Sequence record: PP793740.1
DNA length: 64,000 nt
Strand: one strand, 5' to 3'
The position numbers and the translations under genes are program-made. A model generated the notes under the pieces. The model made no database searches, was not told where the DNA came from, and saw only the letters and a program-made list of their open reading frames with translations. This document shows, in pieces, positions 1 through 14,042 of this stretch (positions are counted from its first letter, which is position 1; each line of letters opens with the position of its first letter).

Positions 1-131
1 ATCCCAACAATTTGAATACTGCGTTAAAAATAAACAATCAAAAAATAATGACAGTGAAAATATCCAAGTTATTAAAGTATGCGCAGAGTCTATTGTACTC
101 CTATATCCGACTAATGAAAAATAAAGCATTT

Positions 132-151
132 AAGCCCTCATAGGAGGGCTT
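132..151. terminator. Intrinsic terminator-like hairpin
   Basis: AAGCCCTC-ATAG-GAGGGCTT followed by TTATGTCG. Confidence 0.6.
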
Positions 152-619
152 TTATGTCGTATGGCTAATATGCTAGTGAATAACGAATAAAATCGATTAT
201 AGAGCAAATTAGAAGGTATTAAAGGCATAAAGAAAGTCTATCTCTAGACTTATTATTTTTAATTAAAAAAAAATATAATCTATACTGTGTCTCCTTTTAG
301 GGAGACAGTATGTATTAGCTAACGCTATTAGAATAATGCTAATATTGTTTATTATTAGAATAAGGATATACCTTCGGTATAGTTTATTATGAAATAAAAG
401 CCCCTACGGGGCGATCCGATTCATCAGTTCCACATTAGGTAATATTCATGAGTAATATTTGATTACCAGTATTACTCAATGATACTGGTAATAATATACT
501 AGGTTATTAACAATATGTATTGATTATTCTGATTAAGTCAAATTAGTTAATAAACAAATCAATTATCAACGAGTGATAACTGGTATTGATTACTAGCTAA
601 AGAGATTAATTAGGATATC

Positions 620-711
620 TACATGAGGAGTCGCTACCCCATGTATACTGGAGTGTCTCTTTAGCGGGAGACTTAACTCCACTTGGGAGCCGCTTTAGCG
701 GGCGGCTCTCA
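620..711. other. Three adjacent hairpins with mutually complementary loops (candidate structured RNA or DNA element)
   Basis: Stems 620-645, 650-680 and 684-711. The last two share the loop TTAGCG closed by a T.G pair; the first loop contains CGCTA (632-636). Confidence 0.5.
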
Positions 712-739
712 CTTAAACAAAAAAAGAATTCAGATAAGT

Positions 740-759
740 CCCTCTCCTGAAGGAGAGGG
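740..759 (-). terminator. Intrinsic terminator after the 768..1073 gene
   Basis: CCCTCTCC-TGAA-GGAGAGGG just past the stop codon. Confidence 0.7.
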
Positions 760-767
760 GTTGTTTA

Positions 768-1073
768 TCATAGGCTTCTCCTTTCGGTTACATAGAACTT
801 CTTCTGATCCATGTCAGTGTCCGTTACTATGAAATTGTCGAAGGGGTTGATGGATACGGCTAAACTTGCGTTGTTGACGTATCCTATCGTAGGACCAGCC
901 CAATAACCAATGAAGTGACCTTTACGATCTCGACATTGGATAACATTATCAGCGTGTATTTTCGCAACTGACATGCTATGGGTTGATCCATCGGGTCTCT
1001 TGAAAAAGAAACCCACATCCTGCATTCTGTGCAGGTCAGGGCTAACATTGTTAGCGGTAACTGGAATTAACAT
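768..1073 (-). CDS. Hypothetical protein (101 aa)
   Basis: ORF with AGAGG RBS and a downstream hairpin; no recognised family. Confidence 0.7.
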   Translation of the reverse strand: MLIPVTANNVSPDLHRMQDVGFFFKRPDGSTHSMSVAKIHADNVIQCRDRKGHFIGYWAGPTIGYVNNASLAVSINPFDNFIVTDTDMDQKKFYVTERRSL

Positions 1074-1203
1074 GATGGTTCCTCTTGTTAATCCAAGCCC
1101 ATTTGGGCGAAAATGTTGAGTATTTTTTACTCAACGGCATATAGCCCTACTGTTGCAGCAGTAGGGCTAATTCTTTTATTCTTAAATGTTTAACTGAATA
1201 AAT

Positions 1204-1225
1204 GCCCTCTCCCGAAGGAGAGGGC
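1204..1225. terminator. Intrinsic terminator
   Basis: GCCCTCTCC-CGAA-GGAGAGGGC followed by TTATGTCG. Confidence 0.7.
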
Positions 1226-1238
1226 TTATGTCGTTGAT

Positions 1239-1514
1239 TTATTTAACCAGCGATGGTTCCCTAATACGAGAGATGCATAGATAATTACTATAATCGCTAG
1301 GGTCGTACTCATCATACCCTAGACAACTTGTATGGATATATTCAGTACTGATATTAATCATATCAAGAGTAATACCATCACCCCATTTCTTAGTTGCCAT
1401 CTTGATAATATCGGCGATAGTATTGGCCACATAACAATCACCCAAGACATAAAAGGTATCTTCGGTATCATCCGGACGAAAATAACGAATACCATTCTGT
1501 GTATATTCACCCAT
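1239..1514 (-). CDS. Hypothetical protein (91 aa)
   Basis: ORF with GAGG RBS, co-directional with neighbours. Confidence 0.75.
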   Translation of the reverse strand: MGEYTQNGIRYFRPDDTEDTFYVLGDCYVANTIADIIKMATKKWGDGITLDMINISTEYIHTSCLGYDEYDPSDYSNYLCISRIREPSLVK

Positions 1515-1515
1515 G

Positions 1516-1659
1516 TTAATTATCCTCTTTTCCTTCTTGGGTATGATGAGCGGGCTCTACCCAGTAAAAATCAATAAACAGATCAACTGGTTCACAGCCG
1601 ACCGCCTCACTGTCATCGGCCCATTTACTTTCATCTGCGATAATTTCTTCATTGGTCAT
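1516..1659 (-). CDS. Small acidic protein (47 aa, not in the ORF track)
   Basis: Hand translation MTNEEIIADESKWADDSEAVGCEPVDLFIDFYWVEPAHHTQEGKEDN; AAGGAG RBS; fills the gap between genes. Confidence 0.65.
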   Translation of the reverse strand: MTNEEIIADESKWADDSEAVGCEPVDLFIDFYWVEPAHHTQEGKEDN

Positions 1660-1698
1660 TTGTATTTCTCCTTATTTACTATATTGAATATTGTTTAG

Positions 1699-1911
1699 TT
1701 ACATAGTCCAATTAGTGGCTTCATCAACCATGTCAGCTGCTTCTTTATCAGAAGCATTCCAGAGTTTATCAGCCCATTCTTTATCCATTTCATTTTGGAT
1801 ATTTTCAAGACGCATGTAATTATGCCATGCCTGACCCAGGCGAAGATTCTTATTATTTTTGTAATAAATTCCAAACTCACCACGAACTGATGCAGGAATT
1901 GAAATAGTCAC
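1699..1911 (-). CDS. Hypothetical protein (70 aa, GTG start)
   Basis: AAGGAG RBS; start overlaps the TGA of the upstream gene. Confidence 0.7.
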   Translation of the reverse strand: MTISIPASVRGEFGIYYKNNKNLRLGQAWHNYMRLENIQNEMDKEWADKLWNASDKEAADMVDEATNWTM

Positions 1912-2069
1912 TTTATAATCTCCTTAGTTACTATCTGACGTGCTTCTTTATAAGAAATATTCGGATTATCATTGATGTATTTAAGAACTTTCTGATGTAT
2001 AATGTTCTCTCGCTCAGTTAGTTCTTTTACTACTCTTTTAAAATAACCTGGTGATCGTTTCATAGTCAT
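1908..2069 (-). CDS. Small basic protein (53 aa, not in the ORF track)
   Basis: Hand translation MTMKRSPGYFKRVVKELTERENIIHQKVLKYINDNPNISYKEARQIVTKEIIK; overlaps both neighbours by 4 nt. Confidence 0.6.
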   Translation of the reverse strand: MTMKRSPGYFKRVVKELTERENIIHQKVLKYINDNPNISYKEARQIVTKEIIK

Positions 2070-2353
2070 GGTTCTTCGATTAACAAGTTATTTGCCTCGA
2101 AAAAGAATGGGGCTGACCAGCTATAATCTGGTTCATTTACCAGTTTTACACTGTTCTTGGTTTTGATAATCTTGCGATCATACCGCCAGTTTTGTGGTCC
2201 ATGTTTAGGAATAGTGTAGTATTCACCATCGGGTAGATTAGTGGCTTTTTCCCATCCGAGTTCTTTAATACTAAACTTTTTATCAGTTGTCATTTTCTTT
2301 ATTTCCTTGCTGTCATGAAACCACCCGGTGGCCGTATCAAGCTGCGTCCCCAT
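2066..2353 (-). CDS. Hypothetical protein, paralogue of 2649..2912
   Basis: Shared motif NLP.G.Y...P.HGP.....DR. Confidence 0.7.
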   Translation of the reverse strand: MGTQLDTATGWFHDSKEIKKMTTDKKFSIKELGWEKATNLPDGEYYTIPKHGPQNWRYDRKIIKTKNSVKLVNEPDYSWSAPFFFEANNLLIEEP

Positions 2354-2356
2354 GGT

Positions 2357-2641
2357 TTATACTGCACGTGGGATCACTGATATCTCAAGAGTCAGATCAG
2401 CCGCGTCCAGTAGGTTTACCAGGGCGTCCAGAGAGAACTTGTCAATCTTGCCTTTGAGAAGATCATTCAATCTCGGTTGCGTAACATGTAGGCGAGCAGC
2501 AGCGTCTTTTTGCGGAAGATCCCAGCCCTTTATAGTACGGGTGAGAGCCCGCATGAGTTGGGAACGGATACGTAGGTTTTCAGTTTCTTTTGTCGAGTCA
2601 ACTAGTGTATCCCAGACACCGGGAGTGCATTCGTTTGCCAT
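2357..2641 (-). CDS. XRE/HigA-like helix-turn-helix antitoxin homologue (HTH_37 type), orphan
   Basis: VWD.L.D...E.ENL.IRS.LM..L and Q..AA..LHVTQPRLNDLLKGKI.KFSLDALVN, typical of RelE/Gp49-associated HigA2-type antitoxins. Confidence 0.8.
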   Translation of the reverse strand: MANECTPGVWDTLVDSTKETENLRIRSQLMRALTRTIKGWDLPQKDAAARLHVTQPRLNDLLKGKIDKFSLDALVNLLDAADLTLEISVIPRAV

Positions 2642-2648
2642 TTATTTA

Positions 2649-2912
2649 TTACCTCTTGAGGTAAATGCTCGGATAATAAACTACATTATATTTAAAGAAA
2701 TCACTTACCTTGAATTTTATGTTCGGTGCAGTGATTAGATAACAATAATCACCATCAACCATAACGCGTCGATCATGGCTATATACCCTAGGACCATGTA
2801 ACGGAGAAGTTACATAAATTCCATTGGGAAGATTCCGTAAATCGTCTTTATTCAGAAACTTACCATTAGGATTTATAGTTAATGGATAACAACCAGGATT
2901 AAGTTTATGCAT
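2649..2912 (-). CDS. Hypothetical protein, paralogue of 2066..2353
   Basis: ORF with GAGG RBS; shared HGP motif. Confidence 0.7.
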   Translation of the reverse strand: MHKLNPGCYPLTINPNGKFLNKDDLRNLPNGIYVTSPLHGPRVYSHDRRVMVDGDYCYLITAPNIKFKVSDFFKYNVVYYPSIYLKR

Positions 2913-2928
2913 ATTTCACCTCTTTTAT

Positions 2929-2953
2929 AAACCACCCTTATATAGGGTGGTTT
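2929..2953. terminator. Intrinsic terminator
   Basis: AAACCACCCT-TATAT-AGGGTGGTTT with a T run. Confidence 0.65.
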
Positions 2954-2959
2954 TTTTTT

Positions 2960-3235
2960 CTATTGACCAATATACGTGCTGGTGTATAATTCAATGGTTG
3001 GTTTATGAATGGTCAGATTATATTTCTTAGCTAAATCATCAATATCCCTGGAACAATCAATGAATTTGCCAGTCTCTCGGTAGCGCATCACCCATGAACC
3101 CCGAAATGGTGCATCATCTAATGGATTAATACCATATTCACGACATACCACAATTGCTTCATGTCGTGGAGTAGCACCAGTAGTGACAAAGTGATTTTCA
3201 TAAACTGGGATCATTGATACATCTTTATTGCTCAT
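2960..3235 (-). CDS. Hypothetical protein (91 aa), paralogue of 4229..4480
   Basis: Start moved to MSNKDV, which follows a GAGG RBS; REYGINP...RG.WV.R...TG.FID motif. Confidence 0.7.
   Translation of the reverse strand: MSNKDVSMIPVYENHFVTTGATPRHEAIVVCREYGINPLDDAPFRGSWVMRYRETGKFIDCSRDIDDLAKKYNLTIHKPTIELYTSTYIGQ

Positions 3236-10986: not shown

Positions 10987-14042
<3,056 letters not shown>

Follow-up and report, generated by a model that had tools for sequence, protein, structure and literature searches.

Three hairpins of a phiKZ-type jumbo phage are the 3' half of the small RNA TU089

Three adjacent hairpins at positions 620-645, 650-680 and 684-711 of a 64,000-nucleotide (nt) stretch of DNA from sequence record PP793740.1 (the window, to which all positions refer unless phiKZ coordinates are given) are the 3' half of a known small RNA of phage phiKZ, published as TU089 or "5'UTR_p40" (UTR, untranslated region), and are not new. 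With a probability of roughly 0.78, we take them to be the structured 3' domain of a phage small RNA of about 197 nt that is ended by hairpin 3. By sequence identity, the window is from a phiKZ-type jumbo phage: positions 1-1300 are 100% identical to the Pseudomonas phages Churi and vB_PaM_W10-2, and 97% identical to phiKZ. An earlier note, made from the sequence of the window, had described the three hairpins and proposed a structured RNA with a kissing-loop interaction, or a signal at the DNA level.

A published small RNA contains the hairpins

The + strand of the window corresponds to the minus strand of phiKZ. Between positions 517 and 770, a window position x converts to the phiKZ coordinate 115439 - x, which places the three-hairpin site at about 114819-114728; window 560-770 and phiKZ 114879-114669 are 97.6% identical. 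At this site, ONT-cappable-seq (ONT, Oxford Nanopore Technologies) of phiKZ defined the middle-class promoter P060 with a transcription start site at 114922(-), which differential RNA sequencing (dRNA-seq) also detects, the terminator T053 with a transcription termination site at 114725(-), and the gene-free transcription unit TU089 of 197 nt (114922-114725) (Putzeys 2024, PMC10914365, bioRxiv tables). Table S7 of that study lists the 197-nt species as a "5'UTR-derived" non-coding RNA candidate of PHIKZ_p40, validated by Northern blotting (probe JVO-18831) and Grad-seq (PMC10914365), and the sequence given there matches the window locus. By Grad-seq, a species of about 180 nt was found in RNA polymerase-sized and 30S fractions, together with a longer, mRNA-like form, and the Northern blot of the same study shows a longer band too (Gerovac 2021, PMC8545117). 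The probe maps to 555-583 with one mismatch, antisense to a + strand RNA.

Transferred to the window, these coordinates put the start of the RNA at G517 (the G of TATG) and its end at about 714, three bases past hairpin 3. The five substitutions listed relative to phiKZ lie at 525, 581, 647 and 655 and, upstream of the RNA, at 503 (-14), the last being the only difference in the promoter stretch 467-516. The earlier note was right in reading the hairpins as part of a structured non-coding RNA, as they lie within a Northern-validated transcript of 197 nt on the + strand of the window. It overlooked that this RNA starts about 100 nt further upstream, that hairpin 3 is the mapped 3' end, and that a terminator hairpin follows at 738-762.

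Known RNA families do not account for the transcript. An Rfam search of window 1-3000 at a permissive E-value gave as best match over 559-715 a score of 16.4 bits against a threshold of 50 (E = 7), and ARAGORN found neither a tRNA nor a tmRNA. A 6S-like RNA was dropped as a candidate because the architecture is unlike 6S. A sponge for Rsm/CsrA was dropped as well: GGA motifs are frequent, but most of them lie within stems, and phiKZ hairpins typically have G-rich arms. We found no later functional study of the small RNA in the literature.

Structure of the three-hairpin element

The sequence and RNA folds bear out all three hairpins (Table 1). Folding z-scores are -4.8 for 610-770 and -5.5 for 517-714; none of 200 shuffled sequences folds equally well, and the fold is well beyond what is expected by chance. 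Hairpin 2 scores 32.9 bits in phiKZ with a covariance model (R1).

Hairpins 2 and 3 carry the same loop on different stems, as the earlier note had seen. The 10-mer CTTTAGCGGG is common to 659-668 and 693-702 and has no further exact copy in the 64-kb window, and the stems of the two hairpins differ via compensatory changes. As RNA, the apex can close further, with two U.G pairs stacked onto a UAGC tetraloop. The CGCUA exposed in loop 1 (632-636) indeed complements UAGCG exactly, and in the ensemble it is for the most part unpaired. The absence of a U tail was also confirmed, both in the sequence and by a terminator scan: no U run follows any of the three.

Table 1. Features of the small RNA locus in the window
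Feature	Position	Strand	Description
Promoter region of small RNA	467-516	+	Orthologous to phiKZ P060, middle promoter; ends in TATG
Small RNA, ~197-198 nt	517-714	+	Orthologous to phiKZ TU089; fold z = -5.5
Read-through transcript (phiKZ TU088, 715 nt)	517-1232	+	Ends at T051 hairpin 1204-1225
AT-rich 5' domain	522-618	+	Predicted single long imperfect hairpin; carries probe target 555-583
Hairpin 1 (type A)	620-645	+	6 base pairs (bp), A/C mismatch, 2 bp; 8-nt loop AGUCGCUA; Shine-Dalgarno-like GAGGAG and two AUG codons
Hairpin 2 (type B)	650-680	+	5-bp outer helix, 3-nt 3' bulge, 5-bp inner helix, UUUAGCGG apex
Hairpin 3 (type B)	684-711	+	10-bp stem, UUUAGCGG apex; equivalent to published terminator T053
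A-rich single-stranded linker	715-737	+	Between hairpin 3 and next terminator; A-run length polymorphism at 718
Canonical phiKZ-type terminator hairpin	738-762		C-rich arm, 4-nt loop, G-rich arm; TTAT on minus strand, GTTGTTTAT on plus strand
101-amino-acid open reading frame (P0001)	768-1073	-	Shine-Dalgarno sequence AAGAGGAA; convergent with small RNA; antisense-covered by read-through

The start codons in hairpin 1 could also be read as those of a short leader, either a peptide of 13 amino acids (AUG 623 to UAG 662-664) or one of 7 (AUG 641), for which the hairpins would serve as translational operators. Spacing is compatible with such a leader, as AGGA (612-615) precedes AUG 623 by 7 nt and GAGGAG precedes AUG 641 by 10 nt; the 13-codon frame (623-664) stops at the UAG of the hairpin 2 apex, and the RNA of about 180 nt co-sediments partly with 30S subunits. 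Nevertheless, both start codons and the Shine-Dalgarno-like GAGGAG are buried in hairpin 1, and variation in the frame is non-synonymous in three cases and synonymous in one. Middle transcription of phiKZ takes place inside the phage nucleus, apart from ribosomes; attenuation by a leader peptide cannot operate if the nucleus separates transcription from translation. The authors' own screen for open reading frames (ORFs) of at least 10 amino acids with a Shine-Dalgarno sequence still kept the RNA as a non-coding candidate (Putzeys 2024, PMC10914365). We regard a coding leader as very unlikely.

The 3' end at hairpin 3

Hairpin 3 and its flank are identical to phiKZ, and the published termination site, the Northern blot and Grad-seq agree with each other on where the RNA ends. 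Since this end lies three bases past hairpin 3, the latter would be a hairpin that both forms and protects the 3' end. The Northern signal at about 180 nt and the Grad-seq coverage support an end here over one at the next terminator, which would give about 250 nt.

Hairpin 3 is not a classical intrinsic terminator. It is followed by CUUAAAC and then by a run of A, none of the three hairpins is in the terminator-scan list, and the "predicted type" of T053 is blank in the published table (Putzeys 2024, PMC10914365). More than 70% of phiKZ terminators have a C-rich arm, a tetraloop, a G-rich arm and TTAT (Putzeys 2024, PMC10914365). As canonical phiKZ terminators, too, hairpins 1-3 were rejected, as none matches this motif (C-rich arm, 4-nt loop, G-rich arm, TTAT).

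The A-rich linker at 715-737 is a possible site of cleavage, or of oligo-dT priming in the published mapping. One and the same 13-mer, TTAAAC and then an A run, stands directly 3' of both T053 and T005 (window 711-727; phiKZ 12575-12587 (-)). It may represent a signal common to the two ends, or the ends may be an artefact of oligo-dT priming during mapping. Neither the Northern blot nor the Grad-seq coverage involves the oligo-dT step.

Conservation within the genus

The small RNA is highly conserved in an alignment of 18 Phikzvirus genomes, with seven variable positions in 517-714. Four of these fall within 620-711, namely 647-649 in the linker between hairpins 1 and 2, and 655 in hairpin 2. 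The change G655T is the sole stem polymorphism, and hairpin 2 keeps 13 pairs by moving its bulge. Hairpin 1, hairpin 3 and all loops are invariant in 18/18 genomes, and the folds are preserved across all six haplotypes. This invariance says little because the whole region is about 97% conserved.

Beyond the genus the locus was not recovered. A BLAST search ("distant" mode) of 560-770 against 50,697 phage records found it in Phikzvirus genomes only, other genera matching just the canonical terminator hairpin. A pattern scan for the twin apex in IMG/VR gave 23 loci, which apart from trivial repeats had no hairpin context; the same scan of metagenome contigs gave at least 120 loci, and among the matches listed none was similar to the locus by blastn.

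Recurrence of the apex and of a two-hairpin module in phiKZ

The apex recurs in a third phiKZ hairpin that also closes a mapped 3' end. The 8-mer TTTAGCGG occurs eight times in phiKZ, three times as the apex of a hairpin: in hairpin 2, in hairpin 3, and in a hairpin at phiKZ 12015-12042(-) with a wholly different 9-bp stem, the UUUAGCGG apex and the published 3' end T003 (12011 -). The T003 hairpin resembles hairpin 2 in an outer helix that begins with GGA and in a 3' bulge. Two bases 5' of it stands a 6-bp hairpin whose loop contains AGUCGCGA, one base off loop 1, and AGUCGC-A is found in both loops. The resulting two-hairpin module (phiKZ 12010-12075 (-)) lies in another convergent gap, near the terminase gene. 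Differences from the small RNA locus are that the stems are unrelated in sequence, that a canonical TTAT follows, and that loop A lacks full complementarity to the apex.

PA1C, a more distant phage, retains the module at T003 with about 95% conservation. PA02, FBPa36 and Churi-type genomes carry a replacement instead, which in the PA02/FBPa36 type is a hairpin with a different apex, the type-A hairpin being absent. Variants at the T003 locus include a compensatory change from U-A to C-G and changes that are compatible with G.U pairing on the transcribed strand; in NK1, the apex changes from G to A with pairing preserved. In an apex-anchored alignment of the copies, all five inner pairs are kept through two-sided changes, with a covariation score of 0.64 versus 0.28 for shuffled alignments, to be read with the caveat that the copies had been selected for being hairpins.

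Other members of this class were sought in several ways. A strict scan of the phiKZ genome and the covariance model R1 gave none beyond the three phiKZ hairpins; in other phages, R1 found the T003 homologue in PA1C only and nothing in phiPA3, 201phi2-1, Phabio and EL, where exact apex matches are not hairpins. A scan of both strands of phiKZ gave 295 strong strand-specific hairpins with stems of 8 bp or more; apart from this apex, the apexes that recur among them are those of the canonical terminator family, whose stems are conserved. An Rfam search of the T003 region gave noise only.

A further relative of the 3' domain is seen at T055 (phiKZ 117934-117952 (-)), antisense inside the capsid gene PHIKZ119. 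Here AGUCGCUA is fused to the 10-mer of the 3' arm of hairpin 3, which occurs only twice in the phiKZ genome, and is followed by UAAAC. T055 shares with hairpin 3 the AG-CGC/GCGGCU stem, then CUC and UAAAC, and differs in its 3-nt loop. It looks like a collapsed copy of the 3' domain of the small RNA within a coding region.

As judged from these sequence comparisons, the recurrence speaks for selection on the apex as part of a small class of hairpins at 3' ends. The UUUAGCGG apex is a rare, recurrent hairpin cap in phiKZ and most likely acts as a structural cap or as a recognition feature.

The second of these roles could extend to protein binding, which would be compatible with a small RNA ended by hairpin 3. 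The UUUAGCGG-capped hairpins, possibly with the AGUCGC-A hairpin, would be bound by a phage RNA-binding factor, the twin copies recruiting a dimer, for termination or antitermination independent of a U tract, for stabilisation, or for export from the nucleus. Three hairpins with unrelated stems and the same 8-nt apex among the 295 strong calls fit such a module. One of the three closes the mapped 3' end T003 and another T053, and hairpin 2 lies inside the T053 small RNA. The arrangement of type A and type B hairpins at two loci, the retained pairing in NK1, and the sedimentation of the small RNA in complexes fit it as well. On the other hand, no binding protein is known, the motif is dispensable in phages of the PA02/FBPa36 type, and it is absent from phiPA3, 201phi2-1, Phabio and EL. 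Both the module and the particular roles listed for it are possible, though we think them rather unlikely.

Complementarity between loop 1 and the twin apex

In the kissing interaction proposed earlier, the UCGCUA of loop 1 would base-pair with UAGCGG in the apex of either hairpin 2 or hairpin 3, within one molecule or between two, and thereby switch or multimerise the RNA. The duplex would contain five Watson-Crick pairs and one G.U pair (-7.1 kcal/mol), and loop 1 is largely unpaired. A 5-nt complement of the apex is also present in 1.6% of real phiKZ hairpin loops and in 1.5-3.5% of random genome words; taken alone, the complementarity is only moderately unusual.

The apex is less accessible than its drawn loop suggests. 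Its outer U.G pair is formed in about 96% of the ensemble and its inner one in about 56%, so that only UAGC is reliably open; G666 is unpaired in 44% and G667 in 4% of the ensemble, compared with the at least six contiguous complementary exposed bases by which we defined a kissing pair. The T003 module is not in favour of pairing either. Its loop reads AGUCGCGA (AGUUGCAA in OMKO1), the fifth pair is broken in every variant, and the loop changes of OMKO1 are unmatched by changes in the apex at T003. Evolutionary upkeep of the complementarity was thus not found, with no variation at the locus itself and loss in the T003 paralogue. All kissing partner sequences are invariant in the 18 genomes, which is uninformative at the conservation level of this region, and the observation was made post hoc. 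Together, the data weakly disfavour a kissing interaction, which is possible but unsupported, and which we consider improbable.

A more far-reaching combination can be imagined, at similarly long odds. The hairpin with the AGUCGC-A loop and the UUUAGCGG-capped hairpins would be a phiKZ-specific modular RNA signal, and docking of loop 1 on one of the twin apexes would toggle between the 197-nt RNA and antisense read-through. If true, a modular signal would be read by a phage factor or by a non-canonical RNA polymerase for 3'-end formation independent of a U tract, and read-through would silence the convergent gene for a protein of 101 amino acids, as an RNA-only timing switch in the phage nucleus.

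Genomic surroundings and read-through

The hairpins are housed in a gene-free gap of about 640 bp (window 130-767) on which two gene sets converge, a + strand operon with a DnaB-like helicase, 117.4 and 117.3, and a - strand operon with PHIKZ108-116. The final bases of the gp117.3 gene (about 30, window 90-119) exist as two very different haplotypes among Phikzvirus genomes. Upstream of the small RNA, 29-51 bp 5' of its start, there is an inverted repeat CCAGTAT/ATACTGG (466-488) with a 9-nt loop that is the exact reverse complement in FBPa36, Wadjak2, PA7, PA02 and SL2. This swap at 473-481 amounts to five alternating substitutions and is a hairpin-loop inversion polymorphism. On the far side of the gap, a 12-bp hairpin at 1142-1169 has a polymorphic loop with four clustered sites (1153-1158).

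The DNA-level options of the earlier note, cruciform or single-stranded hairpins for replication priming, packaging or recognition by a polymerase, found no support. The long gene-free gap does adjoin an operon with a DnaB-like helicase, and the inversion polymorphism at 473-481 indicates that DNA forms hairpins here in vivo. The longer stable stems of hairpins 2 and 3, in contrast, exist only as + strand RNA, as they need its G.U pairs; this strand is transcribed, and the RNA stops exactly past hairpin 3. Moreover, the cumulative GC skew does not turn near 114.7 kb, and the gap is a zone of convergent, not divergent, transcription. A role as DNA therefore appears extremely unlikely to us.

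The hairpin at 738-762 is probably a bidirectional terminator. It fits the canonical motif, best on the minus strand, and among genomes its loop varies while the stem is kept. The hairpins at 1204-1225 and 133-155 fit the motif as well. It is not among the published phiKZ terminators. In one RNA run, contigs break at 735/764, that is, at this hairpin.

Could the three hairpins instead function on the opposite strand, backing up termination or stabilising the 3' end of the minus-strand operon that ends with the ORF of 101 amino acids? They lie 30-140 nt downstream of the terminator of this operon, and the minus strand folds well (z = -5.1). On that strand, though, the G.U pairs of hairpins 2 and 3 are lost, their loops span 8 nt and mismatches appear, the canonical terminator (762-738) is encountered first, and no phiKZ plus-strand 3' end is listed at 114239-115200. 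We rate such a role as highly improbable.

The ORF of 101 amino acids opposite the read-through looks like a real gene. It is intact in 47/47 Phikzvirus genomes, 12/20 of its variable sites are at codon position 3, it matches phrog_25431, and it is annotated in most recent records; the protein matches no Pfam family. Annotations are in conflict here, as RefSeq phiKZ places p40/117.2 (811-906 +, 31 amino acids) and p39/117.1 (973-1119 +) opposite this ORF. Both p40 and p39 lack a ribosome-binding site. The comparison suggests that the ORF of 101 amino acids is more real than the annotated p39 and p40. Because p40 and p39 have no ribosome-binding site and the opposing ORF is coding-like, the label "5'UTR of p40" is doubtful.

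Read-through past hairpin 3 is probably antisense RNA to this ORF. The published longer unit, TU088, runs from 114922 to 114207 (715 nt) (Putzeys 2024, PMC10914365). Four RNA-seq runs from four studies of phiKZ-infected material gave contigs that were placed on 300-1300, among them 522-1240 (X11), 533-1210 (X12) and 266-1232 (X7). Contig ends coincide with 517-522 and 1232-1240, consistent with a read-through unit 517-1232.

Proposed mechanism and its weighing

In phages of the phiKZ type, RNA polymerases of the phage itself carry out transcription within a nucleus walled by protein. The small RNA would be transcribed from the middle-phase promoter at G517 on the + strand, as in the literature for phiKZ and here by 97-100% identity, and the nascent RNA is predicted to fold first into the AT-rich 5' hairpin and then into hairpins 1-3. 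It would end at about 714, where hairpin 3 (T053) would form and protect the 3' end without a U tract, hairpin 2 being a tandem second copy of the same type. For the formation of the end, we envisage either that a phage RNA polymerase terminates at the hairpin, or that the A-rich linker is cut and trimmed back. Transcripts that pass both hairpin 3 and 738-762 would run antisense over the convergent ORF of 101 amino acids and stop at about 1232; hairpins 2 and 3 may thus set the ratio of small RNA to antisense RNA.

Several points weigh against this account. T053 is not classed as an intrinsic terminator and lies directly 5' of the A run, and its exact end in ONT-cappable-seq could have been shifted or created by oligo-dT priming, or could reflect processing. 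The expression evidence is from phiKZ itself, which is 97% identical to the phage of the window, and the RNA-run contigs reveal neither strand nor exact transcript ends and are a matter of consistency, not proof. Stems and loops are nearly invariant within the genus, hence there is no covariation support at the locus itself. Finally, an antisense role rests on preferring the ORF of 101 amino acids over the RefSeq genes p39 and p40.

The hairpins are now tied to one of the few experimentally confirmed small RNAs of phiKZ, and the basic picture of that RNA is unchanged. Our additions are modest: the recurrence of the apex at T003, the two-hairpin module at two loci, and the antisense re-reading. 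The twin apex, the module and the re-reading are worth a bench test, and bear on how phiKZ polymerases terminate and on what phage small RNAs do.

Comparison with known systems

Hairpin 1 (621-644) resembles the MS2 coat-protein operator (19 nt; sequence checked in the literature) in having both arms, an unpaired A and the GG/CC pairs, and it likewise buries a Shine-Dalgarno-like GAGGAG and an AUG. As an operator of the MS2 type, with an AUUA tetraloop, it was rejected, since its loop has 8 nt and an additional C faces the bulged A. To our knowledge, a levivirus-like coat protein is not expected in such a phage, and no search was made for one.

With ColE1 RNAI/RNAII, R1 CopA/CopT and the HIV-1 DIS, the hairpins share short mutual complementarity between loops. 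In those systems, 6-7 complementary loop bases are fully exposed and the pairing is backed by experiments, whereas the phiKZ loops offer five pairs and one wobble, have a partly closed partner loop, and are known to be complementary from sequence.

Hairpins 2 and 3 have in common with the canonical phiKZ terminators that they are GC-rich stem-loops against an AT-rich background and mark 3' ends with no classical U run behind them. They differ in having other stems, an 8-nt apex (or 4 nt plus two U.G pairs), and TTAA rather than TTAT.

Bacterial and phage small RNAs that derive from 5'UTRs by premature termination likewise have a promoter-proximal terminator that yields an abundant short RNA and minor read-through. 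The phiKZ RNA is set apart by the lack of any known ligand, regulator or coupling to a leader peptide, by the doubtful status of p40 and p39 as downstream genes, and by a read-through that probably runs antisense to a convergent gene.

The closest relative is phiKZ TU089 itself. The papers on it speak of "two stem-loops", the twin apex, loop 1 and the recurrence at T003 being unremarked there; locus, strand, promoter, probe site and 3'-end hairpin are all the same, with 97-100% identity over 517-714.

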